A stretch of 64,000 nucleotides of DNA, taken from Vicugna vicugna. Taxonomy: Eukaryota. The stretch covers positions 2,076,301-2,140,300 of the forward strand of contig MU057801.1 in assembly GCA_013265495.1 (NCBI GenBank), written 5' to 3'. Below are positions 4,600-62,012 of this stretch, piece by piece. Position 1 is the stretch's first letter. Each line of letters begins with the position of its first letter. The translations under genes were made by a program, and so were the position numbers. The notes under the pieces were generated by a model that made no database searches, was not told the DNA's origin, and saw only the letters and a list, made by a program, of their open reading frames with translations.

Positions 4600-4755
4600 G
4601 ACCACACACGGCATCAGGACTTCGAGGTATGGACACGTTAGCTCTGTCGGGTGGCGTTTATACAGGTGTGTGCGTTTGTCAAAATTCAGCAAACTGTCTA
4701 ACGTGTTCGCAGGTACTGTATGCAACTCACACCTCAGTGGAGACGGTTTTAAAAA
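4600..4755 (+). mobile_element. Ancient L1 (L1MB/MC/ME-like) 3' end fragment
   Basis: ggtggcgtttatacaggtgtgtgcgtttgtcaaaattcagcaaactgt...acctcagtggagacggttttaaaaa matches the recalled L1M 3' terminal motif ggtggttacacgggtgtatacatttgtcaaaactcatcgaactgta...cctcaataaagttg. Confidence 0.75.
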
Positions 4756-7700
4756 TCCATAAGCACTGCTCGAAGGCCCTCGCTCCTCGCGTCTTCCGTC
4801 GGTGGTCCCAGCGTCCCAGAACGAGCACGCTGCAGGGCAGGCGGGGGCTGGGCCGTCGCTCTGCCACAGGCGGCTCGTGACCTTAACGCTCCACAACACA
4901 GCCTAAATCAAAGACAACCTAAGAAGCTGGGTTTTTTTTTTCTCTTTGAGCAGGAAAGAAATATTTCTTAGTCTTAATCCAGAGGTGTAGAAGTCATCTA
5001 ATGTTTTCACTGAACCAATGACCTGCCTTAGTGGGGCCCCCGAAGCAGACCCTCAGTCAAGGGTTTGGGTGCAAGTTCTGAACGTGGGAGGTGGTCCCGG
5101 CGGCCCCCGCTGCGGTGGGGGTGTGGGAGCGTGAGGGAGGGGGAGACGGGAGCCAGAACAGGCGTGTCAGTAATCAGGGGACCGTGCCGGGCACAGGGCT
5201 CCGTCCCGAGGGACACCTGTGGGAGAGGCTGTGGACCTGAGGGGGGAGACGCTGTGACAGGTGTGCACAGACCCCACGGGCTGAAGCCTGCTCCTGGGGC
5301 CGTGACTGCACTGAGCGTCCGCCCGCCCAGCCCGCACACCGGGCACGCCCTGGGGACTAGAAGAAGCCACCAGGGACGAAGCCAAGAAGCTCACACTGAG
5401 CGGCGCTGGGGGGTGCGGGGGGGCAGCGGGCGCTGAGTGGACGTCGTGGAGCAGGACAGTCCCCGCCAGCGTCCTGTCTTGTGCCTGAGAAGCCCACCCA
5501 GAGCGCTCCTGTTCGGCCCTTGTTTGCTGGGGTTCCCCGGACTCTTTTGCTGTCCCTACTGTGACGGTTGATTTGTGGCTCAGTTATTAGCTCTCAACTA
5601 AAGTGCAAGATAAGCCACAGTCAGAGGTGATGCCTTACTGTGTCCACACGTACAAAGCCCTCTTGTGGGCTCGAGAACACCGCTCCCATCCACCGAGCCC
5701 TTGTCGGGAACCAGACACCGAACCAAGCACTCTCTTGGCGCCCGTGTCAGAATCACCCTCGGCCGAGGCGACAGAGGCTTCTCCCACTTTGCAGTTGGAG
5801 AAGCTCAGGTTTGGAGGGTCCGGCACCTGCCCGGGTTCTGGAATTTGCCCAAACTCCCAACCCCAGTCCCCCTGTTCTTTCCACGTTTCCCAGCAGTGCA
5901 GGATTCCTTCCCCAGGGGGCCGTGCCCTCAAGATCAGAGAGTCCGCGATCACACTAAAAGTCTAAGAGGATGCTGGTGGGCAGAGAACGGGACAGAGACA
6001 CAGAGTGCTTGCAGGCTCGAGGCGTGTGGCAGCAGCTGACACAGAACCTGCGAAGTGCTCACCGCTTGCCAACAGAGACAAATCTGTTTCCCAGGAATAT
6101 GACAGAAAAGGAATTAGCCCGCCCAAGGGCCCGCGACAGCAAGGGCTGCTCCTGGCGAACACAATCTCAGACCCTTCATTGAAATGCAGGTTCTCTAGGT
6201 CAGGTCCGAGGAGTGGGGCCCCAGCCCTGACCGCACGTGCACAGCCAGCTCCGTGTCCCGGCCAGCGGTCCCTCGCAGAAGTCCCGCCCTCTGGCCTCCC
6301 TACTGTATCCGACGCTCATCACCAGCTCACGCGTCTCCCCGCCTCCTGCTCTGTGGCCCCCAGCACCAGCCTGCCCTTGGCCCCCGCCTCTCTCCACCGC
6401 GGACGTCTCGAGGACGGATGGCTGATCGTGTACCAATGTGTCTGGGGGACGAGCCTGTCTTTCCTGCTACAACACCTCGCAGGGAGCCCCCTTTTCACTC
6501 CGGAACGCAGGATGTACTGGCCTCCTTCCCCGACCCACATCCCTGACCCTTCCTGTGTCTGCTGGGATCACCCGAGCAAACCGCTGACACTCCGCGTGGA
6601 AGCCAGCCTGAGCCGCTGCCTCAGCATGACACGAGCTGGCGCAGCCGGTCCCGACTCCACACGCAGAGCTGCGGGCTCCCGAGGGCAGAGCTCAGGCGTG
6701 ATGGGTTTGTGCCGTCGCCCTCAGCCTGGAACACCAGGCGGGAGAGCCCCAGGCTCTTGGGCGTGAACGTGTTACCGTTTTCACAGCACTCTGGGTTAAA
6801 ACGTAAGCTCTCCAGGGCGCACGCGCCAGCGCAGGAAGCCTGGCAGGGATCTGGCAGAAAAGTGGTTCTCGGTCACGGTCCACCTGCACCTAAAGTGCAT
6901 CCCAGGGCCCAGTGTGGACAGGCCTCCGTGAAGGGGAGCTGGCCCGGAGCTGTTAAGGGCCCAGGGGGTGACTTCAGGGTGCTGGCCACTCTATGCTGCA
7001 TGTTTTTACATGAGCTGCTGGGGCTCAAAGCCAAATTTGGGCTCACTCCTAGCAGAGTGTTGACTGCACCCCTCGAGTTTTCCCCAGCAGCCTCATTCCC
7101 GCTGCCGCCTCCTTCCCGGCCCCTCCCGCATCCTCTCCACCCCTGCGTGTTCTCACTGACTTGTTTCCCGGGCACAAGGAGGTAGGAGGACCCCGTGGTC
7201 CTGACTGTCAAGAAGACACTCGGTCTCGCGAGGAGGGTGCCTCGGATTCCAGAGCCGCGGTGCTGGGACTCAGGTCTGGGTCGCTGTCCCACAGCCCGGG
7301 ACTGGCTTCCGCCTCAACCGAGGGCCCATGTTCTGCCTACTTGGGAATTCAGTCTCCTCCAAACAGGGACTCAAGCCTGAGAAGACACACGAATAGTATT
7401 CTCTCTCATGCCACCGGCGGAGTCAGCGCTGCCCCAGCCCGGGTGGCCCGCGCCCTCGCGGCCAGCGCTCGCCGGCGGCCTAACGACTTGCAGCTGTGGC
7501 CGCCACCGCCTAGCCTCCGGGAGACCGCAGACCGGCGGAACCGCGCCCCGAGCTCTGCGGTGCTGACTGCCAGGTTTCCAAAGCAGGGAGGCTCAAAGCA
7601 GCTGCCTTGCACGCGAAGAGAGGCACTTAGGGACACTCCAGACAGCGACGGTGGCCTGTCACTCGTGACGGGGGTTAGTCCTCTGACTAACAGGGACGCG

Positions 7701-9084
7701 CTCCCCCGCCTCTGCCGCTTCTCGCCCTCGACACCCATCTCTGAGAGCTTCGCCTGCATGCTCCATGAGCATGTTCCAGCCGTCTCTCGTCCATCCCGGG
7801 AGGCTGCCTTTCTGCTCACCGTGTTTATGACCTGCTTCCTAGCGCTCCTGACGTTTCATCAGCTTTGAGAACCCCTGAACAGTCATCATCATTTTTAAAT
7901 GTCCATTCTTCCTCGCTGGTGCGATGCAGCACATAATCCAAGGCTTTATTGGTTTTCCTATTGATACGTTAAACCTGGAAGTGAGACTGACTCTCTGGTC
8001 CTGAGTTTCAGCCACTGTGGAGCTGGAAGGAGGCGGAGGCAGCCTGCACACACAGGCGCGAGCCTGGACTTGTTCTCGGGGAGACGGCCGCCCTTGGCTT
8101 CTGCGGGTTCAAGGACGGAACCCACTCAGCACCTCAGTAAGTCAAGCCGTCTCCCGTGGGCAGAGAAATGCCACGTGCAGAGCAGAGCGAAGCCGGGGGC
8201 CAGCTGGGAGGTTGGCGTGGGAGCCAGGGCAGTGGCTGGAAGGCAACGGCCACGGGAAGAGGCCGCCTGCAGGTAGGATTTGCTCCGGAGGTCACAGGAC
8301 CCAGACTCCAGGGGACCTGATCTCATTTCATAGCATCAGACACGGGGGGCGGGGGCGAAGCACTATGGTGGGCAGAAGGGGCCGAGAGAAGGAGAGGGTG
8401 GGAAAGGAGGGGGCTGAGGATGAGGGATTCAGGCGAAGCTTTCCTGGGGCTCGTGCTGCAGCTGAGGGGGTGAGAACAAGTGGCAGGCGCCCCTGCTCGC
8501 TCCCCGGGGTGGGGCAGCTGGTCCTTAAGTGGGGGAGGGTGGGGACAGGCCCAGGGCTCAGGCGGGAGGGGTGGTGGCTCAGGTGGTCGGCCCACCCCCT
8601 TGGTGCTGCCGTGCGCAGGGATCGTGCCCAGCACCACACAAGTGGCAGTTGGGTTCTTGGTCTTCCTGCATCTTGTTCACAGTGGGCCCCAGCTGCACAT
8701 GCACGCAGTTATTTTTAGTCCCTTGTAGTTCCTTTGTGTTCTGTTTCTCCAGGGGAGTCTGTCCAGGTGCGGGCCCTGCAGCCAGGGGTCCCGGGTCCCA
8801 GCCTGTCTCACCAGTGACTCTTTCCGTCAGCCTCCCTCCTCCAAGGCCCAGTCCTGCTCTCCCAAGCGTGCTGCCCTGGGCAAGGGAGGGTCCTGACAGC
8901 TGGACTTCCAGCTGAAGTCTTGACCCCACTTTTCCTAGGAAATGGCCGTTAGAAGCTATTGCCTGGGCCTGAGTAACCACGCCGCCCAATCCAATCCCGA
9001 GCTCAGCTGTAGATACGGGACTACAGCTCTGGAAAGCCCTGTGTCCTCCTCCCACCCCAGGTGGGAGATACAGTCAGCCTGACA

Positions 9085-9138
9085 ATCACCCTGCACGAGT
9101 GTTGTCCCCCGCCGATCACCCTGCACAGTGTCGTCCCC
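9085..9138. repeat. Two-copy ~30-bp tandem repeat
   Basis: atcaccctgcacgagtgttgtcccc at 9085 and atcaccctgcacagtgtcgtcccc at 9115. Confidence 0.85.
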
Positions 9139-12100
9139 TAAGGCCCCGGGCCGCCTGAGAAGCTTCCTTTCCCCGCGGAAGGCCTACCTGGGCGCCCGCC
9201 CCGCAGACGCACAGGCGGTGGGTGTGGGCTGCACGTTTTGCTGAACCGCAAACGCAGTGTTTCTGACTCTGACACACTTTGCACGGAGCCTTCTGTGTGG
9301 CTGGAATGTGCCGCGGGCACGCTCGGGGCCGTCCCCTGGGGAATGCTGAGCTCCTTGGCTCAGAGACACCCATGGTTTCTCAGCCTCTAAAAGAGTTTAT
9401 GAGCAGAGCATGGACTCTCCCTCCCCTTCCCTCCCCTCCCCTGCCGCTACTCCCGGCCATCAGAGGAGGAGCCCTTCAGCCCACCCGGGGCCCCTTCCCT
9501 TCCCCACCCCCACCTTGACTCTCAGTCCTTGGCACCTAGCCCAGCCAATTTCCTCGGTCACCCCAGGCAGCAAGCGACAGGAAAACTGGGATCAGACGGA
9601 GCGCCGCACGTCACCTGGTGCTGCTCCGGCCACACAGGCCTGCAGCTCCCGTCTGAGCCCAATCCGGCCCTTTACTCTCCAGCTGCGTCTGTGAAGCAGA
9701 GTCCAGGGGGCCTCAGGTGCTGCAGCTGTGTGGCGTGCCGGGATCCTGCCGGCTGCGGGCAGCGGGGCCGAGCCAGGAGAGCCCACAGAGCAAGGAGAAC
9801 AGTCTGGCCTCGGGGCCACTCCAACTGGGCGGAGCTGGGGTGACCAGTATGGTGGGCAAGAGAACCCCGGGGGCCTTTGGTCAGGAAGGGGCCTTGGGGC
9901 AGGCTGTGCCATCGGCATGGGGACAGGACCCAGGCGCACTCAGGGCAGGGCTGGGTGAAGACAGGGGAGGCCAAGCTCTACTCTCCAGGACATGGAGTTC
10001 AAAAGCTCGTGAGGATTAACAAGCAGGCAGAGTTCGAGCTTAAAGGCCAGAGGCCCAGCAGAAAATGGAGGCGGCCCGGAGAAGCCCAGGAGGCGGGCTG
10101 GGAAAAGCCCACGGGGGATGGGAGGGAGGTGTGGCTCAGGGGACAGCGCAGGGCCCAGGACGGCATGGACTGTGGAAGCTGGGGCCCCTCGGGCCAAGGG
10201 CAGCACGCTGGAGTGGCAGAGTGGGGAGGGCCCCTGAGAGGAGGGCCGGTCCCAGCCACGCTGCCTGGGTTCCTGCGTCTACGGAGCCCAGAGACCTGGG
10301 GCCCGTGGACGGGCCGGTCCATCCTGCCCAGGTCCCTCCCGGCTCCCCACTGTCCTCTCTTCTGCACCCCCAGGGTCTTCCTATAGCCTTCACTGCCCTT
10401 GGCACCTCTTCACCTGTCCGTCCACTCCCCTCCAGCGCCAGGCTCTGGGAGGTCGCTATTTTGGTCCCTGTTCCAGCTTCAGAGCCTGAGACACCGCCTG
10501 ACTTGTGGGGAGGGGATCTCTTGGAAAACACTGGGACAGAGAAAAAAGAATGAGTGGAAAAGATAGAAAACCCAAGACAAACTGAAAAAAGAAAACCCAA
10601 ACGAGATTGCATCTCTGTCTCCTGAGTTGGCGGCATTTGGTAAATAAGTTCTTGGCGCCCCCTCCCCACCACCTGCTACAGATGCACAAAAAGGAGCTCT
10701 ACCCACGGCGATCAGTGTGGTCGTTAACTCCCAGGCGCACTGCACACCTACTGAGCGCCGGACACTGTTTCCTTGATCCACAGCCTGCGGCGTAACTCAG
10801 AGGGGTCCTGCTTAGCAGATGGACCGACTTCCAGCACACCTGACGTGGCGGCTGAGGACAACCTGTGCCCCCCTTCACCCAGGAACCGGGTGCTTCTTGC
10901 TTCCGTGCGGTGCCAGTCACAGGAGAATGTGCTTTGGTCCCACCCTTAAGGCAGATCATTCCCTGTGCTTCACTCTGGCTGTTAGATCAACCATCTCGTC
11001 TCATTTCAAATTGTACACTTGTGAAACTTTCCAGGAGTTTAGCCAAATACTCAAAAAAGAAAAACAAAAAAACAACTGCTGGTTTGATCACTGAAAGCCA
11101 GAAACTGAGGCGCCCTTGAAATCGTATTTCAGAAGACGAGATGGTGAGATTTTTCTGAGAGGCTATCATTTGACAATAAATGAATATTTCATTGGATCTG
11201 CTGGAAATGCTTTCCTTTGAAAGTTAATTCATGGGTTTGGGCTCTCTCTGGTTGCCTTCCATCTCAGAGTCCAGGACTTATGTCAGATTCAGCTTTTCCA
11301 CTCCTGGGGAGGAAAAAAAATCTCTAAATTTTAAAACTAGGTCACGATTTATTTTTCTTAAAGGAAAAAGCCTGACAGATATCTGCATTTTGCTACAAAT
11401 GAGAATGAGTAGGAATGAACCAAATGCTGACAGCCTGAGGGCGTGTTCCGTCCCTGTTAAAGCAGCCAAGGCCCCTCCCCGCCCCAGAACCCGACGTGTG
11501 CGCGCCGGCTTATTTCCGGTCACACAAGTTGACTGGAGACGCTGGGGTGGGCGCCGAGGATCAGTGGGTGAACGCGTCCATGCACGTCTCCTGGGCCCGA
11601 TGGCCGTTCGTGGTGACGAGGGGCGGAGGTAGCAAGGCTCCAGCTCTGAAACTTACTCTCAAGTGGCCCAGGAGTAAAAGACGTTAATTCTGTGCCTGCA
11701 GCTTCTCTGGATATTTAAGACTGCTTTCAAATTTTAAAAAGCGGGTTGAGACCCCCACTACCCACACAATAACCCCCTCCCAGACAAGGCATGTGATTCA
11801 GGCCCCTCACGTCCCCTGGGCGGCGGCCCAGGCTGAACAGCACCTTTTGTATCCGTTCCCTTTTTGCTGCTTCTTAGCACCTGGCTGGTCTCCCTAAACA
11901 ACCCAGGGACTCTTGGCAACGGGAGAGCCGATGCTTGGAAGGCAAAAGCACGCCAGCCGGGCAGTGACGCAGGGTCACTGTGTTCAGACCTCTTGCTTTA
12001 CAGGTGGGGACGCTCAGGCAGACATGAGGCGACAGTCCGCAGCTGGCCCCGGCCGCTGGCGTCCCCTCCTGGGCCAGCAGGCTCACCACCCTGTCTCCCG

Positions 12101-14612: not shown

Positions 14613-15766
14613 TTGAGCTGAGAAAGCATGTGCTAGGACCAGGACGGAGATGTAAATGGAGAAAGACAACAAGCCGTCTGGGCACCCAGTCTCCTCCCGA
14701 CATCTTGCCCTCTGAGCCGCGAGGTGGCGCCTCCATGGCCTACAAGAGCTGCGCAGCACCGCCTGCCTCATCTTTGTCCCAGCCGGTGGGGTAGGGAGGA
14801 GCATGCTTGGGGCCAGCAGCTTCCTCTGAAGGATGCGACGTGGACGCTGCACGTGTTATTCCTGGTCGATTCTGTCTGCCAGGACATAGCCTCGTGGCCA
14901 CATCTGGAGGCACGAGAGTCTGGGGAGTGTCTGGGGTGCAGGGACCCTGGGCACACTGGGGATGCCAGGAGGGAGGAGAGAATGAATAGCGGGTGGTGAG
15001 TTGCATCTCAAATCCAAGGGGCTTCAAGTGTGACGGCTGAGAGCATGTTCAGTCTCCTCAAGACCCGAGCAAGTTACTCCCAGATCCTCGCAGACTAGTG
15101 GTCTTTGTTCATCGAGTGATGAACGTGGCGCCTGGCGTTCCAAGTTGGGATAGGGAAGCTTAGCTGTGAAAGGGCACTGCAGCCCCGGGACGGCTCCCCA
15201 GACTGCAGCTCACAAACATCCCGTGAGATGATTTTGGAAAACAGGTGTACAAGTTCCCCGCCCCCACCCCGGTCTCATGGGGTGTGCTGTCACTGGTCCC
15301 CCAGGTCCTGTGGGAGAGGAGTTACCCCCTTTCCAACGCCCCTGACCCCGAGCCCCTCCTCACCATGACCTTTCACACTTCCGTGCAGCCGCACTTCATG
15401 GGACACACTTTGAGAGGCACCTGCCAGCATGGTAGAAATGAGCAAAAAGAAGAAAGAAACAATACAGTTAAAAAACAAAATAAAGCAAGCCATAGACACG
15501 GTGCCCACACCACGTCCTGTTCTGAGGGACGGGAGGGGCTGTCTCTCTGGGGGACTGAGCACACCCCGGGACTCCCGGGATGAGAGAGGATTTGGCCGGA
15601 TTACGTCTAACAGAGGGATTCCAGACCACATCTCCTCTGCTCTCATCACCGGGTACAGAGGCGACCGAAGGCTCACGCTTTCCGTGAAGTTGGTGTCTTG
15701 AAAGCAAGGACTACGTCTGTCCTCCGTGCCAACCCCACATCTTCCCACCGTCCTGACGGACGTGCT

Positions 15767-15794
15767 GTGAGTGAGCGAGTGAGTGAGCGGGTGA
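15767..15794. repeat. Short imperfect (GAGT)n microsatellite
   Basis: gtgagtgagcgagtgagtgagcgggtga. Confidence 0.7.
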
Positions 15795-16929
15795 ATGGAG
15801 AGGATTCCGAGAGCAGACCCAGCCCTGGCAGGGACGTGGCGTAGGACTGCCCCCTGCGGGGACACTGCTGAGATCAGAAATGCCCACTGCTGTGGTCACT
15901 TAGCCAGAGGGCGGCAGGAAAGGGTGGGGCCTCCCACTCTCCCAGTGCCCCGCTTTCGCTCCACACGCAGCTTCCCGCATAGCCGTGGAGTCTGGGGGCT
16001 TCTTCGACAGGAAGGGGTAAACGTTCATCTTGAAACAGTGCAAAAGCCAAACCTTTTCTCCATTGCTGTTTGGGGCTGAATTCACCTCCGATGAGAAAGC
16101 CACAAATTGTCACTGGAAAATGCTCATTAGAATGTGATGGGGAAAGCAAGATTGGAGTCTGGGGGATGGGACGGGGTGCAGACCATTTCAAGCATTTGTG
16201 CAGATACGGACATGAGAAGTCTGGAGGGAGATACGCCCGCGGCCAACAGTTTTTAGCACCGGGAGCAGGGCTGCGAGAGGCTCCTTATCCTCACTGCCCC
16301 GCCCTCAGTGAGCAGCCCGGCCCAGGGCCCCGGGGACACCTTCGTCCCTGCCTGGCTGTCACCCTCCGCGGGCTGCTGCAGGCAGGCGGCTCTCTGCTGC
16401 TGCCCAGGGGGCCCTGCTGGCCCCGCTCCTGGATGGCGGTCCCCGAGTCAGTCCCAGCGTCTGAGCTGAGACCTGCAGTCCCCCATCGCCAGCCCCTCAA
16501 CGCCATGGAGGGCTCCCAGCCGTCTCCTGCCCTCCCACCCGGAGTGACAGACAGGACACGATTCCAGAAAGCGCCACGCAGGCCTGGTCTTGTGAGTCTG
16601 TCCCTCGCCCGAGAGCTTAGCTTGACCACAGAGAAACCGCTCCCTGGGGGACGGCAGGCACGTGTCTGCCGCACGTGGGCTCCAGGGGTGTCCCCTGTGG
16701 CGCGGAGACGAGAGGTCGCCCGAGGCTGCTGCAACATTCCCGCTCTTAGAAAGGGCCTTGGCCTTTGGCTGTGCGTCCGGCAGGGAGTTCTAGCAGGAAC
16801 GTTCCTCCCAGGAGTGTGTTAACTAAACAAACGAGGCCGTAGTGGGACGGTTGCCATCGCTTTACGTTTCAGTGTAGAGGAAGGAGGGCCTGCCAAGAAC
16901 CAAGGGGGCCCGTGTGTGTGGTGCCTGTG

Positions 16930-17017
16930 TTCACACCCTCACGCGCTCACAGACACACACTCACAGACACACTCTCATGCACTCACACGCAGTCACACAG
17001 ATACTCACACACTCACA
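16930..17017. repeat. CA-rich low-complexity tract
   Basis: cacaccctcacgcgctcacagacacacactcacagacacactc... directly visible. Confidence 0.8.
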
Positions 17018-18465
17018 TGACAAAGAATGCTCAGGGTTTGGGTATTTCCCTCCTATGAGGCTCCAAGTGCATTTAAAAGTGAACGAAAGCCAGAGCAAGG
17101 CCGTAAAAGCTGTGCCGTATTTTGAATGTTTACTTTGAACAACACTCTAAACGCACATGAGTTTTTTGTGGTGACTCTGAGTAGCTTAACGGGGAGATCA
17201 CGTACAACCCGCGGCCCACATGGCCTGCAGCCCCCGACCCCACACAGCCTCCCCCGGGACAACCCCCTCCCTGGGAGAGGCCCGCGTGCCCGCGTGAGTG
17301 TCCAGCCGCTGAGGCCCACAGGCGGGAAGGGGATGGGAGAATTCGGAGACGTTCCAGGCCCGGCATGTGTGCGGGCACTTCTCCCCCCGGACTGACCCTC
17401 GTCTGTGTGGAGGAAAGGAGCAGAGGAGACGGGTGATACAGACGATGTGGGCTCGACCCTACTGACCGCTCGAGGCTGGAATCGCCCCTCGGCCTGGGCG
17501 CAGCCATCTGCTCACCCTCCTACTATCCCGAGCCAGCAGCCTGCTGGGTACAGATGCCCTGGACCCTGTGCACGGAGATGCTGCCCGAATCCCTGGGCCT
17601 GAGGTTCCACTAGGCTGTCAGAGTCACAGGCCACCACGGCAGCTCAGTGCTCCTGGCCCAGCCTGGCCAGGTCACCTGGTGGCCACCCACCCACGTCCTG
17701 TTCATGCAGCTGCTCCGAAGGCTGCCTGTGGGACACCCCAACTGGGGGGCGGGCATCCCGGTGCACGCGGGCAGAGAGGAGGGACACTGCGTGCGGCGGG
17801 AGTTTTCTGACACCAGGGCCATGTGTTCTGAGAGGACGGGCCTGCAAGTCTGGGGCCAGGAGGACTGCCGGGTGATCTGGGGGCGGCAGACTGACCACAG
17901 GCCCAGCCGCTCACTGCAGAGGAAGGGCAGTGACGGGGTAGGAGGGATGGTGGCGATGCACGTGAGAAAACGAAATCCACAGGGACCAACGAGTGTGTCC
18001 CCAAAGCCGTACCGAGGCAGGGCCACCAGACGCCCTACAGAGACTTTCTTTCCCCTCCTGCTGGTGGCCACCTGCCAGCTACGGCCCCGCAGGCTCTTCC
18101 TTCCATTGATCAGCCGGAAGGCTGCCCGATCGCATCCTCACCTCCCGCGCCCTCCCGTGGACTGCGTACCACGTTGCTGGGGGAGGCTCTCAGGAGGAAC
18201 AGGCCCCCGGCCCAGCAGGCCCCCCAGGACCAGGGGCCCCTGTGGTGGTGGCGAGATGCCAGTGGGAGAGCGAGGATGAGGAGACCAGCGCGGAGGTGGC
18301 AGGAAGGTTGCAGGACGTGGAGACCAGCCCTGACGGTGAGACAGGAGGCGCCGCCGTGTAAACTGCTCTATTGGTGATGCGAGCGTTCGGGTCCTTCCAG
18401 AAAGACATGAAGATGGAACTAAAAGTGGGAGTCGGGTAAAAAGTGACGGTCTAGACACTGAAGCA

Positions 18466-18682
18466 TTTTTTTAAAATGTTGACATTGTTTCAGACCTGCA
18501 GAGAAGTTACGGCAAAAACACAGAATTGCCGACATCTTTCACCCAGAGACCCAGGTGGGAACTCTGCGTCTCTCTCTCCTTCACTCCCTTTACCCCTAAA
18601 TACTTTCATGCGTCCCCTAAAAGCAAGAACATTCTCTCACAAAACTTCAAAAATGATCAAAATCAGTAAATTAAGACCTAAG
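18466..18682 (-). mobile_element. L1MC-like 3' fragment, part 1 (interrupted by MER44)
   Basis: tttcagacctgcagagaagttacggcaaaaacacagaattgcc...cacccag and ctttacccctaaatactttc...aacattctc...atcaaaatcagtaaattaa match the recalled reverse L1MC 3' end. Confidence 0.8.
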
Positions 18683-19460
18683 CAGTTGTGCCCCTTTATC
18701 CATGGTTTCACTTACCCGAGGTCAACCGCAGTCTGAAAACATTAAATAGAAAATTCCAGAAGTGAACAACTGGAAGCTGTAAATTGCACACGGCTGTGAG
18801 CGGCGCGATGAACTCTCGAGCCGCCCCGCCCGGGGTGTGAACCACCCTTTGTCCAGCGCGTCCTCGCTGTTGGTCCCTTAGTCGCCGCTCAATGACCGGA
18901 TAGACGCGCCTCCACGCTTGTGTCCGAGGGACCCTTGGTTTTCTTAGTTCTGGTCCCGAAGCGCAGGAGCGGGGATGCGGGCGACTCGGATACGCCGCAG
19001 AGAAGCCACGAAGTGCTTCCTCTAAGTGAAGAGGCGAAAGTTCTCAACTTAACAAGGAAAGAGAAAAAAGTCACGTGCCGCAGTGGCTGAGCTCTGCGGT
19101 GAGAGCAAAGCTCTCTGTGAAAACGTGGAGGAGGGAAAGGAAACCCGCGCTCGCTTTGCTGGCGCACCTCAAACTAAGTTTTGGGTTCACACAGACAAGG
19201 CATTAAATTTGTACAGGGAGATACTGTGAGAGAGAGAGGGGTGGCCCTCAGTAACTTCCATCACAATACATGGCTGTGGCCGTCTTACTTACTGTTAGTC
19301 ACTGTTCATCTCTTACTGTGCTTAATTTATAAACTAAACTTTCTCGTCGGCGTGTGTGTTTAGGGAAGACAGCGTACACATAGCGTTCGGAGCTAGCTGC
19401 GGTTTCAGGCATCCACGCGGGGTCCTGGCACGTCCCCCTCCGATAGAAGAGCCGACGACA
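18683..19460 (+). mobile_element. MER44-type internally deleted Tigger7 DNA transposon (Tc1/mariner-pogo)
   Basis: Left end cagttgtgcccctttatccatggtt and right end ggtttcaggcatccacgcggggtcctggcacgtccccctccgatag. Internal 18950-19070 translates as LVPKRRSGDAGDSDTPQRSHEVLPLSEEAKVLNLTRKEKK, matching the Tigger7 transposase N-terminus (recalled as MAPKRKSSDAGNSDMPKRSRKVLPLSEKVKVLDLIRKEKK). Confidence 0.9.
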
Positions 19461-19650
19461 CAAACCTATTATCTGATCTGCTGTCCTTTTTCAGATTTCA
19501 CCAATCGTCCCAACAGTGTCCCAGGGCAGCAGGAGCTCGCCTTGGCCCCGGTGGCCCCAGAAACCTCTCCACCTTCGTCTACACCCCACGGCCTGGACAT
19601 TCCACACGACTGACATCCGTTTCACAGCACGGCCCTCGGTCAGGGCAGGC
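19461..19650 (-). mobile_element. L1MC-like 3' fragment, part 2
   Basis: ctattatctgatctgctgtcctttttcagatttcaccaatcgtcccaacagtgtcc continues the L1MC sequence from where part 1 stops. Confidence 0.75.
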
Positions 19651-22600
19651 TGTTTTTAAACTTGCGTCATAGGCAAATCCTGGCTCCCTCGGCCTGAAGA
19701 AGCTGTCCTGCTTGGCCTGCGTCTTATCTGAATCTCAAGACGCTAGTTCTGTTTTGACAGAGGCACAGGAACAGTCCCCTTGGCAGCCCCTCGGTCCTGC
19801 TAGTTCAACCTCCTTGAAGCGGAGCGGCCTCCCCACCCCCGCCCTTCTCAGCAAACTGCTTTCTTTTTCTCTCCTCTGCCCCTTGGTAAGGCTGATTCAG
19901 TCGCCATCAAGAGCAATCCCAGAGCCCAGCGTCGGCCCCGCAACAGGGACCATTCTGAACGATTATTAAGGGTGGATTTCTCCACGTGGGAAAAATCAGG
20001 CCTCCAGCACCACAGCCTGGCAGCCCCCGGGGACCCCAGCTCTGGAAGCGGGGCTCGGGGGTGGGCAGAGCCCTCGGAGCCAGCCACTGAAACAGCAGGG
20101 CTTCGCAGCAGCCCAGGGACTCCGCGCAGATCTGGTCTGCACTGCCTCCCAAGGGCTGGGGAGGAGGGAAGTGGGAAAAATATGAGCGTGAGTCACAGCC
20201 ATTCTTGCACAAGCCTCGGCTCTGGGGTCAGCCGGACCCCGAGTGCGAGCCCACCAGCTCTGGGGCCCCTGTGACCTCTGCCCGTCGCCTCTCACCTCAA
20301 ATCCACACGGCACAACTCAAGTCCACGGTGTGTCGGACACACCCCCGCTTCCCCATCCTTGATGCCAGGCTGGGCGGCCTGGAGAGCCGTGAGGCAAAGC
20401 GAGAAAAACAGAAAACTCAGGGTGACCGCTACAGTCAGCAGACGCAGAGGCCCATCAGGACGCAGGGCACAGAGCACCCTGGTGCCGGCCAGCTGACCAA
20501 GGGCGGCCCCTTCTGGGAAACAGCTCCCTTCAAGGAGCTGATAGAGACCACTCTCCCTCCACGTTTGCTCCAGCGCTCACTCCCCGGGGGTCTGTCATTC
20601 TCGGCACGCGCCTTGACAATAGCGCATCCCCACACCATCATATTTGCGCTAACTTTGGCTCCTGGGCTGAGAGCCTTTCTTCCCCTGGACCTGCTCTGGG
20701 ACCCAGCACAAGGCCAGCAAATTAGTCCTCAGCACAGCACGGTCCAGAGAGGCTCCCGGAGGGGCGGGGCCCACCAGCGCGACCGGAGTTCAACATGCTA
20801 GCAGGTGTGAGTTCTGAGGAAGCGCAGGGGGGTGTGAAGGTGTTTGGGTGGGAGTCTGCCCCGGGGGTAGCCGGTTTCTGCCCATGGCCATCGTGTTTGC
20901 ACGCACGTGGACGGCTTCCTACTGCAGGACCTCCTACCTGCCGGCTTCCTCTGGCGGCAGGTGGGCTGAGCCCCCGTGAGAGGGGCAGGCCGGAGGGCCC
21001 CGGGACAGTCGTCAATTCATTCTGGGTGGGAATCATGGTTAAACACCCAGGTTCCCTGCCCCCTGAGTGGGACAACTCCAGCTCGTTTTGAACCCTTCCC
21101 CACTCAGGCCCCCAGCGGGATTAAGGTCAGATCGCCCAGAACGGAAACTCGCTGGCCCCCCACCCTCTACTGCCTTCCCTGCCTCATGTCCCTGTGAAGG
21201 AAAAGCCCAGCTGGGCTAACGAGCTAAGTCACAAATCTAAATTAATAAGTGTCGGTTTGCTGATTCCCTGTTCGTGCTTTGCTAGCCAGCTGGATTTTCA
21301 AAGACACATATCTGGCCTTGAAATGTCGGTTTGCTGCCTCACTGCCTCTACTTTTGTGATAATGATGTTGCTAAAGCTATTGTGTGCCTATTGGCCGAAT
21401 ACCCCAAGCTTGTACTTAACCTTATAGGGTTAAAACCTCACGTGCACGTCTTGGAGGTGCTCAGGGCTTAGGAGCAGAAGCCCCTCTGAGCCCGCCGGCG
21501 TAATACATCTGAGCGCTCCAGCCCTCCGAGTGGTGCTTGTTTCTTGGCTGGCCTGTCATTTCCGTAACATCCCCACCCCCGTCTCCTGCTTTCTGACTGA
21601 CTCCCAAATAAATGGGATTTTTGTTTTCGCAAGAACACCTGTGTAAGCTGCTCGCACTTGGGGGCTTCACAGGGGAAAGTGTTCAGAACGAACCGATGTG
21701 GAATCCAGAGCTTCGTCCCAGGGCCTGCCCCCCAGAGCACCCCGTAAACGCCGGGGGCTGTCTGAATGGTGGCTCTGCTTGGGGTGGACAGGAGGGACCA
21801 GGGTCTCACCGTCCCCATTTTTGTGGGTCACACTCCGGCCCTGTCCACGCAGGCAGAACCAGGGTTGAGGGTCCGCTCCTGGCTCCCATCTGCTGTGGCA
21901 TCAGGACTTCCCTGCTCTGCGAGTTGAATGTAGGTCCTCAGACAGTGGGCAATGGCGCCGGGGTGATCTAGCCTTGAGAAAGGAACAGCGTCTTCCAGCA
22001 GGAAGGTCTTACTGGACAGATGGTGGCCAGCTGTTCCTATCTCGGAGGCGGGGTGGACACGGGACTAGGTTCACACAGAGACTGTTGAGGTGGGGAGCTG
22101 TGCCGGAGGGGGGCCCCGGGGGCCTGCGGTGGCTCCCCCGAGAGATGTGAGCTGAGTAACACGGCCCTTACTGTCTGGTTCTAGCCTTTGTTAATAGGCT
22201 CTTCCCCAAAGTAGACCTTGGACTTTTATGGACGCTGGGTGCTGTGTGTTGGGAAATACTTATTAAACAGAGGATTTTAGGGTGTATACGTGTGTGTTCA
22301 ATTAGAAACTTACAAGGTTGTGAACGTGCGTGATGCGCTAAGTGAAGAATCCAGGGCTTCCTGCTCTTCTCTCTCTGAATCGCACCTCATATCCAGGCCC
22401 AGGGACCCCCTTCACACTCACGACCTCTGTGATGAGTCCCTCTGTCCTCCTTAAGACTTGTAAAGACAGCCAGAGTCCGCCCCGCCTGTGCGGACGCCGG
22501 GCTCCCACGCAGGGGGATAAATGCTCACAGCTGCTAGTGCTTATTAACAACTTCCGCTTCACAACAGCCTCTGGGAGACAGCGGGCCACGGCTGTAACCA

Positions 22601-23385
22601 GAGCACCCTGGCAACGTGCGAATCGCATCTGCTTTCAAGCTTAACGCTGCGCACCACAAGCAAGTGCCACTTCGGGTTGGACGTTAGACACACTGATCTC
22701 TGAGCTGTCACTAAACGCCTGACCCGGGGGAGTAATGCCTGTCCTGTCACATTATGAGAAACAAATGAGATCACGAACTTTAAACCCTCTGTCTGGTAAG
22801 CAGGAGGGGCGTTCTTAATTTTACCCTAATGGACGATGTTAAAATGAGATGCCTTTTATAAAATCAAGTTGATCCCAGAGAACACGCAGGACTACAGGGA
22901 CTGGCACGTTTGGACATGATGTCTGGCCAGCTCTCCCTGCTCTGCCTGCTGCAGTCACAGCTGCGCTTGACTGCGAGCAGACCGGTGCTGTCTGTTTCAT
23001 TTTTTCATTACAGTTTATCAACAGTTTTTCTCCACTGGAGACATGGAGCCACTGTCATGTTAATTTTCAACAAAATAAAAAGAAAATAAAGAAAAGCTAA
23101 AGAATAGGCTTTTTTTTAACCAAAAAACCACAAAAGTATAAACTGGTGTTAAAAGGAAAGAGTGAGAAAACAAAAGGGACGTTTGAGTGAAGTTTCAGTG
23201 AGTGCTGGGAAGACTTTAAAGTGAGCAAGTGACAAGGCGGGAGGCGGAGCCAGCGGGGGCAGGGAAGGGGCGTCGGGTTTGCTGGGAAGACGAGAAGTCC
23301 GCAATTTTAAAGGATCGAAATATAATTTTTTTTTAATTTTTAAAAGTTTTTAAAAAGTTTTGTTTTGGCAGATTTTCTGTAATTC

Positions 23386-23488
23386 TTTTTTTTAAATTTT
23401 TTTTGATTGAAGTATAGTCAGTTACAATGTGTCAGTTTCTGGGGCACAGCACCATGTCCCGGCCATGCACGTATATACACATGTTCCC
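23386..23488 (-). mobile_element. Cetartiodactyl-type L1 3' end with poly(T) tail
   Basis: ttttttgattgaagtatagtcagttacaatgtgtcagtttctggggcacagc; homologous to three other copies in this window. Confidence 0.85.
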
Positions 23489-24269
23489 GAAACGTCACTT
23501 TATAGTTTACATCTTAAAACCACTTGCTCCGTTCGATCACACGAATTCTCCCTTGTTGAACTTAGTGCTATTTTTCCCTCTAATGAGGACATTTTTCTTT
23601 TTTTCTCTCTCTCTTTTTTTTAACAGTATCCAAGAATTCAAAGAAAACCTATGGTTTAAACTTTAAAAAGTCTCTCCTCAAACCTGCGACAAAGGAAACT
23701 GACAAGGAAATTTCCCACAACCCTACGACTGCGCGTGGGTATCTTAGAAAGGCTCCCTGTGCCGTGTCTCGTCCCAGCGATGGGGATTTGGAAGCAACCT
23801 GCAGCAGGAGGAGAACTCAGACAAACCTGCCGAGCCACCACGTGTCTTTTCCAAGCCTCACATTTTGCAAGCATGTATCCCACAGAATCGCCACAAGCAG
23901 GCGACCCAATCTCCTTGAAAACAAAACTAGCACAAGTGCCAACAAATACTTCGCAAACTGCGTTCACATACGACTCGCCTCGGGCTCCTTGTTTGCCGGC
24001 GTCTGTTAGCACAGGGAAGCCAGCGCCAGTCTCATCCTGCAGGCAGCCTGGAGCCGGGCGTCGTGGTGAGAGCCCCCCCCCGAGTCCGGCCGTCCCGGGC
24101 AGCTTCAGAGAAGAGCCGGCCGTCTTCCCCCGTGTGCCGAGCCCTCCCCGCGTCCTCGGCCCACCGTCTCCGGCTTTAGCGCGCATAAGCCTGAGGCTGT
24201 TCTCCAGCACCCAGTGCCAGAGAGCTATCATCAGTTTGGAAAGAAAGAACGCACGTGGACCTGCAACTT

Positions 24270-24663
24270 TGTTACCGAGTCCAAACTCTCCTCGCGGCAC
24301 GACAGGCCAATAAATCGGGAGACGAGGCGTTGGGACAAGGAATGACGATTTTATTTGGAAAGCCGGCAGACAGGGAAGATGAGGGGCTAATGTCCTGGAG
24401 AACCGTCTTCCCCAAATCAGAATTCAGGCTCCTTTTCTACTAAAAGGTGTAACTGGTTGTTCCAAACTTCTTGATGTCGGAATCCGTTGTTCTTGCAGCC
24501 GTCCACGTGGGTCAGGCCACGTGGGTGTCCCCGTCAACCTCCAACAAGACAAACGTCGTTTCTACTCTGCAACTCGTCTTTGTATGAGTGGAAATGTGTT
24601 CATATCCTGAAAGGTGGGAGCCCCGGGACAGGCTCTCCTGTGAACCTCAGGCTCCTGGCAACA
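24270..24663 (-). mobile_element. ERV1-like solo LTR, reverse orientation
   Basis: TGTT...AACA termini; minus-strand AATAAA at 24350-24355; ccaataaatcgggagacgaggcgttgggacaagg...gaaagccggcagac resembles ungulate ERV1 LTRs. No clear target-site duplication, so the boundaries are approximate. Confidence 0.7.
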
Positions 24664-25140
24664 CTGTTTTACCAAAGGTGCAGCGACTGAGCCCAGGAAA
24701 CAGCACACAGGGTTAGAGCCAAAGACCAGCTCTGCAGTGCAGTCAGATTTGTTCTCCTCTATCCAACTTGTCTTCCCTACAACATAAAACTGCACTTCTT
24801 GATCACTGCAGACCCTCGGAGTTCAAGGAACTAGCAACGAAAACTATCCTTTTCTTTTACTCGTCTTTGTATGAGTGGAAATGTGTTCATATCCTGAAAG
24901 GTGGGAGCCCCGGGACAGGCTCTCCTGTGAACCTCAGGCTCCCAGCAACACTGTTTTACCAAAGGTGCAGCGACTGAGCCCAGGAAACGGCACACAGGGT
25001 TAGAGCCAAAGACCAGATCTGCAGTGCAGTCAGATTTGTTCTCCTCTATCCAACTTGTCTTCCCTACAACATAAAACTGCACTTCTTGATCACTGCAGAC
25101 CCTCGGAGTTCAAGGAACTAGCAACGAAAACTATCCTTTT
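24572..25140. repeat. Tandem duplication, period 287 bp (24572-24853 and 24859-25140)
   Basis: Direct comparison: two 282-bp copies with 4 substitutions seen, separated by CTTTT. Confidence 0.95.
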
Positions 25141-26026
25141 ACGAGTTTGAAGACCAGGAGGAAGCAGCTCAAAACTCTCCCTGACCGAGCGATTCGCATC
25201 TCCATCGGTGGGATTCTTAAGGTCCCCACGCAGCTGCTTCCCGTGTGGACGAAAGTTGGCGTGTATGTTGACTTGGCCGGCCCTGGGCGCTGCGCTCTGA
25301 GAGGGGGCAGGACTTCGTTTAAACTCCACACTGCCCCTCACCCCCGAGAATGTAGGCTGGGGCGGTTCTTCCTGCCTCTCCGTCCAGGACGGGGAGTTCC
25401 TCTCTGCAGCTCTGTGGGGCTTGCCTCTGAGAAGCCACACGCACGCTAACCCGCAAGCAGGGGACACGCCACCAACGGGGCGTTAATTTCTCTGAGAACG
25501 CTCACCTAAAGTACCGGGTCTCCCAATAGGAATCACCTTTAAACATCAAGTAAGCAATTCACTGACGTTGGAAGCCGCGCCCAGAAGGGCCAGCCCTCTG
25601 CTTTCAGTGGACAGTCCCCAGGGCCGGCGTGGGAGCCCTCACATCACCCGGTTCCCAGAAGGATGATGTCTTGCTTCCATGGCAGCATGACTGCCCGTTT
25701 CCAGACCTTCGTGACGTGACGGGGAGTGGCTTTTCTAAAGTAAACCCCAGAGCGTTGTCTATTCACCATGCCACCAGTGGACCTTCAGAAGGACTTCTGG
25801 ACAAAGAGCCACGTCTTGTTAGGAGTTACCCAGAAATGGACAACATCACCTTCTTAATACGAGACGTGGTTGCTTTTATGACGGTACCTTTCGCTGAAAT
25901 TCTTCCCCGTCCACGTCGGCGTTCACAGTGAGCGGAGGGGGCTGTCCACCTGCACCACGGCTCCTGGTGGAGCTGAGGCCGCTGCACCTCTGGCTCAGTA
26001 TCTCTCAGATGCAAACAGAAAGGGCT

Positions 26027-26125
26027 GCACGCGCACACACGGGCTCACACGCACACAGGCTCACACGCACATGGGCTCACACGCACACGGGCACACGCAC
26101 ACGGCTCACACGCACACGGGCACAC
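26027..26125. repeat. Minisatellite, ~16-bp unit (cacacgcacacgggct), ~6 copies
   Basis: Repeating ggctcacacgcacac units directly visible. Confidence 0.9.
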
Positions 26126-26685
26126 CGAGGCATGTGTGTCCTGCTCGTGTGACTGCCAGGGATTTCCTCAGGCCTCCCTGGGGGGGCACACACCCTTGGC
26201 GACATAGTCGGAGGGGAGTGTAGAGAAGGGCCTGGAGGTGGACGCAGGGTCTGGGCAGTGAGCTGGGGCAAAATTTTCACAGCAATTCATCAGAATCAAC
26301 CAGTCTCTCCCTGAATTTTACCAAGGAGGAGCCTGCGTGTGAGCGGCACAGTTTCTCTTCTAACCCCTGGTGAACTGTGGGATCACACGGGGACCACCGT
26401 CACAGCTGGCAGGTGGCACCATGGGGACGTGGAGCCCGACCTGGCTCCGTGGCAGCTGCAGGCTCCACCCTCTTTGTGCTTCATGAGTCAGGACCCACTC
26501 CCTCACCTTCAGTTGGCATTTCTGATGCTCAGTAGTGTGAACTTGAAAAAATGGACTGGCATGGATGGGACCGTCCACTCCGCCCGGCCTGCTTTCCTCG
26601 GGCTCAGGCCACCATGGTGCCGGAAATGCACACCGTGGAGCTCTGCCCAGCGACATCCCTGGGGCCCGTGGGCCTGGAAGGGACC

Positions 26686-56369: not shown

Positions 56370-56680
56370 AGGGAATGGCTGGCTGACTAACGGTTAGATG
56401 CCACTGCAGGGACGCCCGGTGCCTGCAGCTCCAGAAGGAGTTTGAGCAGCAGCTCGTCACCAGCAGACTGATTTTCTTTGCTCTTGGCTCTATTCTTGGT
56501 TTGAGTAAGGCTCTTGCCTCAGGGTAATAAAATGGCTGCAGCTACCCCAGCCCTAATCTCTTCATCCCACCCTGCCCAGAGGGGAGAAAAATCTTTCTTC
56601 TAGTAGCTCCAGAAGAGTCATGGAGTCACTCTCATTGGTCCAGACAAGCCCAGATGTCCATCCCCAAACCAGTCATTGAC
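56370..56680 (-). mobile_element. MaLR LTR (MLT1K/L-like), reverse orientation
   Basis: aaaatggctgcagctaccccagcc...tagtagctccagaagagtcatggagtcactctcattggtcc...tccatccccaaaccagtcattg. Confidence 0.7.
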
Positions 56681-57504
56681 CAAACCCATCCAATCCCGAG
56701 GTGAACAATCGTTTATTTCTGAGGTTGGCAGAGGGGCCCAGCTGGTGGGAGACAGGAGGCTGGGTGCTGGGGAAGCCCCAGCAATGATGCCTACTATGCA
56801 CTCGAGCCCTAGAAATTCTCTCGACTCGACCCACTGGATGGAGGGACCAGACGCAAATGTGGGAACAAGTGAAGATGAGATGAAGAAAACGGTTTCACAG
56901 ACAAGAGAGCAGCCCCTGGAGGAGGCGGCCACCCAGGTGGGTCCACGCTTCCCCAGCCCCGAGACCCCCGCACGAGGCCCCCACCCGTGGCCAGTGTGCT
57001 GGTACCTGCTGCCGTGCGCCAGACTGTTCCTCACACCCTCCCTCTCCCACCACGAGGGGCGACGGCACTGCGCCTGGAGAGGAGAGCGGGTCACCGACAG
57101 AGGAGCTGCCTCGTCCCCGCTATGCAGCTGGTCGGCAGTGGTGTCCAGATCCCAAACCAGGTCTGTCTGAGGACGAGCCGCACTCTCTCAACCACCCTGC
57201 TCTTAGAAAAGCCTGCCTGATGGACACGACCTCGCCTCTGGGAAACTGGGGCAGCTGAGCAAGGAGTGAGTTCAGGAAAGCAGGGGACGTGGCCCTGTTC
57301 GTCCACCAGCAGGCACCGAGTGTGGACGCTCTGCGCTCACGTCCGGCTCTGTGACGCGCTTCTCTCCTCCGGGAGGACCTGCCCGGCGCCCGGGACGTTC
57401 CAGAGCCCGCGCTGACCTCCGGCTCGACCCCGGGCCGCCTTTGTGCCAAGGACCCTCTGGTCTGTAGCTCAGCCTACAGACCCCTCCTCAGAACGATGCT
57501 GTTC

Positions 57505-57960
57505 AGAGTGTGAGACACACGGGCTACAAGCGAACACAGCTCTCAAAACACAAAAAGGTGTTACACAGTAAAAACGTTCTTCTTTTTTATCAAACTGAAA
57601 AAACAAAGATCTAGGCGTGGGTCTCACCCTGACCGTGATCTCCAAGCACTGATGAGGGTAGGGTGGGCCCAGGGGGTGGGGCGTAGCTCAGAGGTAGGGC
57701 GCGCGCTGGGGGCGCAGGCGGTCCTGGGTGCCACCGCCGGTGCCTCCGTGCAGGTGGGGGCGAGGGGGGCGGAGGAGTCCAGATACCTGGACCACTCTGC
57801 TGCGACAGGAGCGCGCCTGCGAGCCTCCCGGGGCGCAGGAAGCGCAGCCGTGCGGACGCGGCCGTGGGCTGCCGTCTGCGCCGCCGTCAGGGCGCGTGCG
57901 AAGTCCCCAGGGGAAGCGCAAGAAGGCGCCGACTCACCGCCCGCCCAGGGCCGCGCCCCG
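57505..57960 (+). mobile_element. Charlie1 (hAT) 3' fragment, interrupted by a SINE; right half extremely GC-shifted
   Basis: Left half acaaagatctaggcgtgggtctcaccctgaccgtgatctccaagcactgatgag matches recalled Charlie1 aacaagatctagcggcgggtctaataactaccgtaatttcgaagtagtgatgag; alignment resumes at agatacctgg (57781). Confidence 0.65.
57673..57775 (+). mobile_element. tRNA-derived SINE resembling camelid Vic-1, degenerate
   Basis: A-box TAGCTCAGAGG at 57684-57694, then tagggcgcgcgct...ggtcctgggtgccaccgccggtgcctcc (recalled consensus tagagcgcatgctt...ggtcctgggttcaatccccagtacctcc); B-box mutated. Confidence 0.7.
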
Positions 57961-58720
57961 GATTAGGCCCCTCCCCGGCCGTGCGCTGCGGGGCCCGCGC
58001 GGCGTCGAGGGGGCTGCGCCTGATTTTCGAGGAGGCGTTTCTGTGTGGCGTGTGTGAAGACACGCAGCACTCGCACGTCCGCCGCCGGCGTTCCCTGGCC
58101 GCGCCCAGTCCGAGCGGCCCCGCCCGCGTCCGCCGCAGAGAAGGCGGGTCACCCGCGCCTGCCTGGGCTCCTTGCCGGACGCCCGCGGACGCTCCGAGGG
58201 GGCGGCGGCTTCGCGGGTTTAAGCAGAGGACGGAAGCCGAACAGCGCGTCACACTCAGACTTCGCTAGAAAAGCGCCGAGAGCGAGCCTGCGCGTGCGCA
58301 CGTGCGGCCGAAGGCGGCGTTTCCAAAGCAGACGTCCTTCCAGTTCCAGCCTGCGTGTCGCTAACGCGCTGGCTCTGACAACGGCACGGGCGTTTCTGGC
58401 GTCCTGCGCCCGTCCTCCGGTGGAGGACACACAGGCCTCGCCGCGAAACACGAGCGGCGCGGCCGGCCTGGGTGCCGGTGACGCGCTCCGACCTGGAACG
58501 CGGCTCCAGTTATCTCCCTCTGCTCTCGCTCGGGGCCTCCGAGCAAGGACCGGGGGGGCCGCGAGGTGCCTGTGAGGTCAGGCTCGGCTCCAGGCCGGGC
58601 CTCAGGTGGTTGTGTTACAGAGCAGTCAGGCTTCCCTGTCACTCGAAGAGCCAGAGAGCCGAGGACGTGACCTCCGACGATGGCCAGCGTCCGGGGAGGA
58701 CGAGCCTTCACTCAGAAACA
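57750..58720. promoter_or_regulatory. CpG island with promoter-like motifs
   Basis: Highest CG density in the window; GC box at 58117-58125, ETS-like CGGAAG at 58231-58236, NRF1-like TGCGCGTGCGCA at 58289-58300 overlapping E-box CACGTG at 58299-58304; minus-strand donor GCG|GTGAGT with the exon ending at 57938. Confidence 0.6.
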
Positions 58721-59404
58721 CGAGTGCTGAGCAGCTAACCTGTCAGCGCTGTCTTGAACCCAGGAGGCAGGACTTCCTTCGTTTAATTTTTGCAACCAGG
58801 AAGGCACTGGGGCTCCCAGTGTGGTAGACACGCTCAAGAAAGCCTTTCTCAGCCACGCCCACAAGGCTTTCAAATAGCACGTGGCAGGGCCCGTGCTGGC
58901 CGCGTGGGACCCCCCGAGGGGTGGAGGCGTGGGGGGATCCGGCAGCCCCAGCACCTGCCGTCCCCTTCCCTGGTGCAGGGACAGCGTCCTCTCAGCCGAA
59001 AAAGAACGCGAGTGCAGCCCACCTCCTCTGTGCTCTGTTCAGTGGATTAAACTCAGCAATTCTGCCCTAAAGCTGAAAAGGGCGAGTCAAAAACCCAAGA
59101 ACAATCCAACGGCGGATGACGTACGTATGGGAAGAAGATGCGTTAAAAAGTCACAGATGCATGAAACATTCCGCTTAATAAACAGACAGGTAAATCCGAG
59201 TCTGTGAGGACAAAGCGCTGGCAAGGCTGAGCTCCCAGGGCTGCGCAGAGAACTGTCTGCCACGGTGGGAAACCTCCGTAGGGACACGCCCGACGCGGCG
59301 CTCACTCTGGCTCCGCAGGGCTGACGAGCACCTGACAGATGCAGCTGGGAAGCTGGTGTTCAGTGCTGTCTGCCGCAACGCGGGCGGCCCCGGAGAGCAT
59401 CATT

Positions 59405-59782
59405 CAAAGTGCAGTCAGACACAGAGGAGGGCAAATGCCGCATGCTACGGTAATCCACTCACACGTGGAGTCAGAAAAGAAAAGGACGCTAGGAACTCAT
59501 CTACAGGAGAAACGGAGTCGCAGACACAGTAGACAATCTCATGGTCACGGGCGGGGGGAGGTGAGAAGGGATACATTTGGCAGTTTGAGATTTACAGGTG
59601 TGAACCACTATACGTTAAAAAACAGGCTGCTTCTGTAGAGCACAGGGAACCATGTTCAAGATCTCGCAACAAACCTTTAATGGAAAAGAGCATGAAAATG
59701 GACATACGTGTGTACGTGCGTGACGGGGGCACTGAGCTGCACCCCTGGAACTGGCACGCTGTAACGGGCTGCGCTTCAGTTT
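59405..59782 (+). mobile_element. Cetartiodactyl-type L1 3' end, ~380 bp
   Basis: gtcagacacagaggagggcaaatgcc...aatctcatggtcacggg...gggatacatttggcagtttgagattt...agagcacagggaaccatgttcaa...cttcagttt. Confidence 0.9.
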
Positions 59783-61960: not shown

Positions 61961-62012
61961 NNNNNNNNNNNNNNNNNNNNNNNNNNNNNNNNNNNNNNNN
62001 NNNNNNNNNNNN
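61961..62012. other. Assembly gap (52 N)
   Basis: Counted directly. Confidence 1.

Follow-up and report, generated by a model that had tools for sequence, protein, structure and literature searches.

The question raised by this locus is how a camelid SINE came to lie, heavily altered, at the left edge of a CpG-island-like segment in a 64,000-nucleotide stretch of the Vicugna vicugna genome (hereafter the window, meaning the whole stretch that was analysed). The first-pass annotation read the arrangement as an AT-rich transposon and an inserted SINE that had been rewritten together into CpG-island DNA, with GC-biased gene conversion (gBGC) as the suspected agent. Two compositional features frame the problem.

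56935–59575, no strand assigned: CpG-island-like segment of 2641 bp, GC 0.64 (0.644), CpG observed/expected 0.85.
57541–57612, no strand assigned: AT-rich patch of 72 bp, GC 0.28, with GC-rich DNA on both sides.

The larger of these has the strongest CpG-island character of any segment in the window and passes criteria of the Takai-Jones type (a length of 500 bp or more, GC of 0.55 or more and CpG observed/expected of 0.65 or more). Its core, at 57800–58600, reaches a GC content of 0.72–0.80 and a CpG observed/expected ratio of 1.0–1.3, and the SINE region sits at its left edge. Measured in 50-bp steps, GC content climbs from 0.28 (57550–57599) through 0.52 and 0.68 to 0.82 (57700–57749), so that the abrupt switch from AT-rich to GC-rich sequence described earlier is certainly there. 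The AT-rich side, however, is a 72-bp departure rather than a baseline: GC content is 0.67 at 56900–57500, to the left of the patch, and 57541–57612 is thus an AT-rich interruption of GC-rich DNA, with no AT-rich domain beginning there. Relatives of the patch were looked for in camel and bovine loci, and none were found. The locus itself is real sequence rather than an assembly artefact, since at least 16 DNA sequencing runs, under three species labels, contain 81–98% of the sampled words of 56500–59500.

To the right of the patch, two further features on the forward strand make up the element in question.

57672–57747, forward strand: tRNA-Ala-like head of a simple SINE of camelids (Vic-1 type) with many A/T-to-G/C substitutions, placed by consensus alignment.
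57748–57777, forward strand: G-rich, purine-rich run at the place where the A-rich tail of the SINE is expected (25 of 30 positions are purines, p = 0.001).

The reference for this assignment was the majority consensus of a MAFFT alignment of 11 SINE copies from the CD247 locus of Camelus ferus (98.6 kb, GCA_009834535.1). These ordinary copies diverge from their consensus by 5–24%, and in the consensus a 76-nt head, which contains A and B boxes of the classical kind, leads into an A-rich linker or tail; roughly half of the copies carry an additional short 3′ module with another tail. The camelid SINE at CD247 therefore comes in two forms, one being the head with an A-rich tail and the other the head with a (TAAA)n linker, a CCTAATTACC-type module and a second (CAAA)n tail. 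The window sequence aligns without gaps to the full 76-nt head and is identical at 55 positions, so that the Vic-1-like SINE announced by the first-pass annotation is indeed present. With scoring that tolerates changes from weak (A/T, W) to strong (G/C, S) bases, the alignment scores about 50, as against 22 for the next-best place on either strand of the window (background mean 11, standard deviation 2.2) and a maximum of 19.6 for shuffled versions of the consensus. At the sequence level, the window element is confirmed as belonging to the camelid family of tRNA-derived SINEs.

What remains of its anatomy also agrees, for the most part, with the earlier description. The A-box region is retained, with 2 mismatches in 18 positions and no equal elsewhere in the window, and the B box was rightly called altered, having changed at 4 of 11 positions. 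As for the A-rich tail that was said to be rewritten, the purine run lies where a tail should lie and would be a tail converted from A to G, but its alignments to real SINE tails, and to the 3′ module, are not significant. Nor did a search for the target-site duplication succeed, shared runs, whether compared exactly or in purine/pyrimidine code, being at their longest no better than those of shuffled sequence, an outcome that is expected if the duplication was rewritten as well. Neither ARAGORN nor Rfam detects a tRNA or other known RNA at the SINE and its flanks; matches to mir-1276 and Vax2os1 were rejected as noise. Beyond the CD247 locus, the SINE probes found no copy at the dromedary B2M locus and no match in metagenome contigs, and in viral contigs they recovered only viral tRNA genes. 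SINE sequence strings had no match in the full text of the literature.

The name Vic-1 for this family is our presumption, taken from the literature and applied by description rather than by comparison of consensuses. The likeness consists of a tRNA-like head that matches the Camelus ferus consensus over its full length. Vic-1 has an A-rich tail after the head, whereas in the window copy the B box and the A-rich tail are lost and no target-site duplication can be recognised. SINEBase lists vic-1 as a simple tRNA-derived SINE of camels (PMC3531059).

The altered state of the head can be described quite precisely, because each change can be polarised against the family consensus, with the proviso that this consensus comes from one other locus and that the comparison covers one window locus and 76 aligned bases. 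Placing an AT-richer consensus on GC-rich DNA gives mismatches that look like W-to-S changes, and the contrast was therefore computed per site and against the ordinary copies. The window copy differs from the consensus at 21 positions: 16 changes run from W to S (12 transitions and four transversions) and only one from S to W, with three S-to-S and one W-to-W. The 11 ordinary copies together show 29 W-to-S, 68 S-to-W, 12 S-to-S and 11 W-to-W changes. The ratio of W-to-S to S-to-W changes is thus 16:1 in the window against 29:68 elsewhere (Fisher p = 6e-7), and the contrast survives removal of the consensus CpG sites (p = 4e-6). Counted per site, W-to-S change affects 0.52 of the W sites of the window copy and 0.087 of those in ordinary copies (p = 1.6e-8). 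Change in the other direction is depleted, at 0.022 per S site against 0.141 (p = 0.019); restricted to non-CpG S sites, the figures are 0.024 and 0.127, a difference that is only suggestive (p = 0.07). As a result of all this, the GC content of the head has risen from 0.59 in the consensus to 0.79 in the window copy. Among the 11 ordinary copies, the balance of W-to-S and S-to-W changes shows no significant trend with the GC content of their flanks.

A clustered excess of W-to-S over S-to-W change, at non-CpG sites as well, is what a gBGC tract or hotspot predicts, and it is found here within 76 bp. The idea that a lineage-specific SINE has been rewritten in a W-to-S direction is therefore borne out. 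Whether the rewriting was also very fast and recent, as had been supposed, is another matter. Changes that are neutral with respect to gBGC (S-to-S and W-to-W) number 4 in 76 positions of the window copy and 23 in 817 positions of the ordinary copies. The family is old, since its ordinary copies lie 5–24% off the consensus, and by this measure the window copy appears to be at least as old as a typical member. Great speed is consequently not required, and the rewriting could span tens of millions of years of accumulation.

Long-term gBGC is the most likely cause of the rewriting of the SINE, and we regard it as probable, with meiotic recombination as the presumed agent. According to this scheme, a camelid simple SINE derived from tRNA-Ala would have inserted beside, or within, the DNA that now forms the left shoulder of the CpG island, perhaps tens of millions of years ago. 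Since then, the per-site fixation of W-to-S changes would have been about six times that in ordinary copies, and that of S-to-W changes about a sixth. Mismatches in the heteroduplexes of meiotic recombination would have been repaired towards G/C, a bias that would act like selection for G/C alleles, and its strength at the SINE would be a local peak on a regional background. Because gBGC would slow the fixation of CpG-to-TpG changes, new CpGs could build up with or without germline hypomethylation, the methylation state of the island being something that we infer. A bias in fixation is favoured over a simple W-to-S bias in mutation because W-to-S change is raised and S-to-W change lowered together.

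A more specific form of mutational explanation deserves closer attention. It holds that hypomethylated CpG islands have a mutation bias of their own, operating without any bias in fixation, for example through thymine-DNA glycosylase repair that turns TpG/CpA into CpG. A bias of this kind has been proposed for CpG islands (PMC4041421), the window copy does lie in such an island, and its CpGs have increased from 2 in the consensus to 8. The contexts of the changes point the other way. Sites in TpG/CpA context were converted at the same rate (5 of 10) as other W sites (11 of 21), and changes of the TpG/CpA-to-CpG type make up only 5 of the 16 W-to-S changes. Moreover, the accompanying loss of S-to-W change is not predicted by a pure W-to-S mutation bias, and richness in GC and CpG extends over the whole window, well beyond the island. 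Since W-to-S change is free of context and includes four transversions among 16, gBGC is favoured over an island-specific mutation bias, which we consider unlikely although it is the best of the alternatives.

The regional side of the pattern is plain from the composition of the window, which as a whole has a GC content of 0.58, a CpG observed/expected ratio of 0.60 and 14 CpG-island-like segments. Ordinary camel loci (CD247 of Camelus ferus and B2M of the dromedary) have a GC content of 0.45–0.47 and a CpG observed/expected ratio of 0.27–0.29. The W-to-S process is therefore regional as well as local, which suggests a regional regime of high gBGC, such as a position near a chromosome end might provide. 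No protein-coding gene was detected in the window: exact look-up of 20 of its ORFs in protein collections found none of them, and Pfam found nothing in the 10 longest. Within 10 kb of the SINE, these ORF look-ups, Pfam and HMMER yielded no protein-coding anchor. A search by way of PCP4 led only to ruminant loci. No second SINE copy occurs in the window, and there is almost no repeated family in it. The one heavily altered camelid SINE in 64 kb may be set beside the 11 copies per 98.6 kb at CD247, where GC content is 0.47 and CpG observed/expected 0.29.

As for the edge of the process, the AT-rich patch and the SINE, half of whose W sites have been converted, are no more than 60 bp apart. Either the W-to-S process is very sharp-edged here or the patch is younger in origin.

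Another means by which the head could have gained GC and CpG is selection for the function of a promoter or CpG island, and two features in the island are relevant to it.

57932–57938, reverse strand: donor-like heptamer GGTGAGT, a motif match only.
58120–58304, no strand assigned: cluster of promoter-type motifs, comprising Sp1 boxes, an ETS motif CGGAAG at 58231, an NRF1-like palindrome at 58290 and an E-box at 58299, all of them motif matches only.

The motif cluster in the island core, 400–550 bp from the SINE, is what speaks for selection. Within the SINE head itself, the changes are evenly distributed and form no recognisable sites. The putative first exon that adjoins the donor-like heptamer (57938–58300) has no transcript support: four RNA runs contain 5–12% of the words of 56500–59500, and none of these runs, which do cover part of the surrounding DNA, contains 57938–58300. 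Words of that interval were found only in genome-sized runs whose kind is unstated. It follows from the 5–12% that the four runs do contain that some 150–360 bases in other parts of the region are transcribed. The word content of the RNA runs likewise gives no support for a spliced transcript leaving the island at 57937/57938, and the window has 5 occurrences of the heptamer where chance would give 11. The new splice donor that had been proposed from the motif is thus not supported. An exhaustive HMMER search of 1.84 billion representative proteins with the longest ORF of the island (176 aa) found no relative, and 13 further CpG-island-like patches of the window likewise have no detected gene. 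Studies of CpG islands in general have found little selection on CpG density (PMC8286816). Selection as the driver of the SINE's gain in GC and CpG is thus very improbable.

A third possibility is that the differences did not arise at this locus at all, either because a GC-rich variant source was copied or because the element is a decayed tRNA-Ala gene and not a SINE. This would be compatible with a polarisation that has only the consensus of one other locus to go by, and with the silence of ARAGORN and Rfam, which leaves the element class to be judged by alignment alone. The variants in question are absent from all 11 real copies, however, and transcription by Pol III, followed by retroposition, is hard to imagine for a source with the disrupted B box. 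The 55 of 76 positions shared with the family consensus, followed by a purine-rich tail in the correct place, also speak against this explanation, and we give it even less credence than selection. Finally, although an AT-richer consensus laid on GC-rich DNA automatically gives W-to-S mismatches, chance similarity as the origin of the SINE resemblance is refuted by 55 matches without a gap over 76 nt, at a score that neither the rest of the window nor the shuffles come near.

"Both sides" of the SINE had been assigned to a single Charlie1 element, Charlie1 being a hAT-Charlie DNA transposon of eutherians.

57800–57907, forward strand: candidate remnant of an AT-rich hAT-Charlie 3′ region, placed with an unvalidated probe, in which about 73% of the W sites are now S.

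The evidence for this remnant is of uneven quality. A 46-mer of consensus quoted in the first-pass annotation had been said to align with nearly all changes in the W-to-S direction. Under plain scoring this carries no weight, since 93% of the slices of the window score equally well; under scoring that allows for W-to-S change, its score is reached by 47 of 2000 shuffles (p about 0.02) and by 18 of 86 other GC-rich segments. A longer, unvalidated probe of 189 nt, presumed to represent the 3′ region of this hAT-Charlie family and written with the window already in view, does better. It aligns collinearly at 57800–57907 with a score of 24.4, a value reached by none of 3000 dinucleotide shuffles (maximum 21.4) and by none of the 86 other GC-rich segments (maximum 21.9). 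In this alignment 28 of 33 S positions are kept, while 20 W positions are unchanged and 41 transitions and 13 transversions lead to S; the portion of the probe that lies beyond the quoted 46-mer is significant by itself (about p = 0.008). A scan of the whole window with a locally adjusted background produced spurious short matches of the probe, and the controls with a fixed background were relied on instead.

The collinearity holds if W-to-S changes are allowed. In nhmmer searches with both flanks, the 46-mer and the 189-nt probe, camel and bovine loci yielded no real copy (0.9 Mb for the probe) that would validate the probe. A degenerate Charlie pattern had no match in metagenomes, and its two matches in genomes were bacterial and random. 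To the left of the SINE, the presumed upstream Charlie sequence does not match the flank. The assignment of both sides to one element is thereby reduced to its right half, and the derivation of 57800–57907 from an AT-rich hAT-Charlie element, which has presumed sequences and not a library consensus as its basis, is offered as a lead only. Support for the alignment stops at 57907, short of the element's end and of the donor-like motif; no terminus of the element was identified, and neither a terminal inverted repeat nor a target duplication was seen.

The island had been portrayed as arising from junk DNA, but a repeat origin is shown or suggested for at most the left 250 bp or so of an island of about 2.6 kb. 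In its strongest form, the idea would be that in the camelid genome long-lived hotspots like those of the dog build CpG islands de novo from transposon DNA, and that this island, including the SINE and the older transposon, became a working promoter with a new first exon and donor. We hold that full scenario to be improbable. What is seen at this locus illustrates a known process well and is not a new kind of process.

Several known systems come close to what is seen here. Across most placental mammals, the peaks of gBGC are at hotspots that are hypomethylated and independent of PRDM9, and this has been offered as the cause of the GC-richness of CpG islands (PMC11161765). The likeness to the hotspots of that study (Joseph et al. 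2024, PMC11161765) lies in a sharp local excess of W-to-S change at a CpG island, non-CpG sites included. There are differences as well: theirs is work on hotspots, with camelids unnamed in its main text (PMC11161765), and the present case is one SINE copy compared with its family consensus rather than a set of lineage-polarised substitutions.

A second comparison concerns primates, in which "biased gene conversion islands" form an established category among CpG-island-like sequences (Cohen, Kenigsberg and Tanay 2011, as cited in PMC8286816). As characterised in that citing source, their CpG-island-like composition is kept by gBGC and not by hypomethylation or selection (PMC8286816). The likeness fits the 14 CpG-island-like patches that occur in the window without a detected gene. 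The primate class, again as described there, is defined by methylation and deamination rates, whereas the present locus is known from its sequence; and, in contrast to what is related of that class, the core of this island also has promoter-type motifs.

A third comparison is with the dog, where CpG-island-like sequence under gBGC can arise "regardless of methylation" (PMC4053742). The GC peaks of the dog are reported as stretches of about 1 kb with very high GC and CpG content that mark stable recombination hotspots under long-term gBGC (Axelsson et al. 2012, as cited in PMC4053742), and a peak of roughly that length and that GC and CpG content is what the vicugna locus shares with them. By the threshold given for the dog in that account, a 500-bp GC content at least 1.5 times that of the 10-kb background, the locus falls short, with 0.77 against 0.58 and a ratio of 1.32, because its background is itself GC-rich.

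While gBGC as such is already well documented in mammals, the locus provides a quantified picture of its strength, in which the ancestral state is supplied by the family consensus and half of the A/T sites have been converted. Almost no G/C sites have been lost in the process, and CpGs have quadrupled. In addition, a window so rich in GC and CpG, with no gene detected in it, suggests that camelids make heavy use of stable hotspots centred on islands. Such use would bear on gene annotation, where false CpG islands could be called, on tests for selection and on the decay of neighbouring genes such as SSTR4.

Some structural details of the loci may be recorded here. The only sizeable repeat in the window is a tandem duplication with a unit of 282 bp, at 24572–24853 and 24859–25140, whose two units are 98.6% identical. 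A run of 52 Ns, either an assembly gap or masked sequence, occupies 61961–62012. At the dromedary B2M locus, the two arms of a 12-kb inverted duplication (positions 1–11993 and 14665–26427 of the locus, 93.5% identity) flank the gene.
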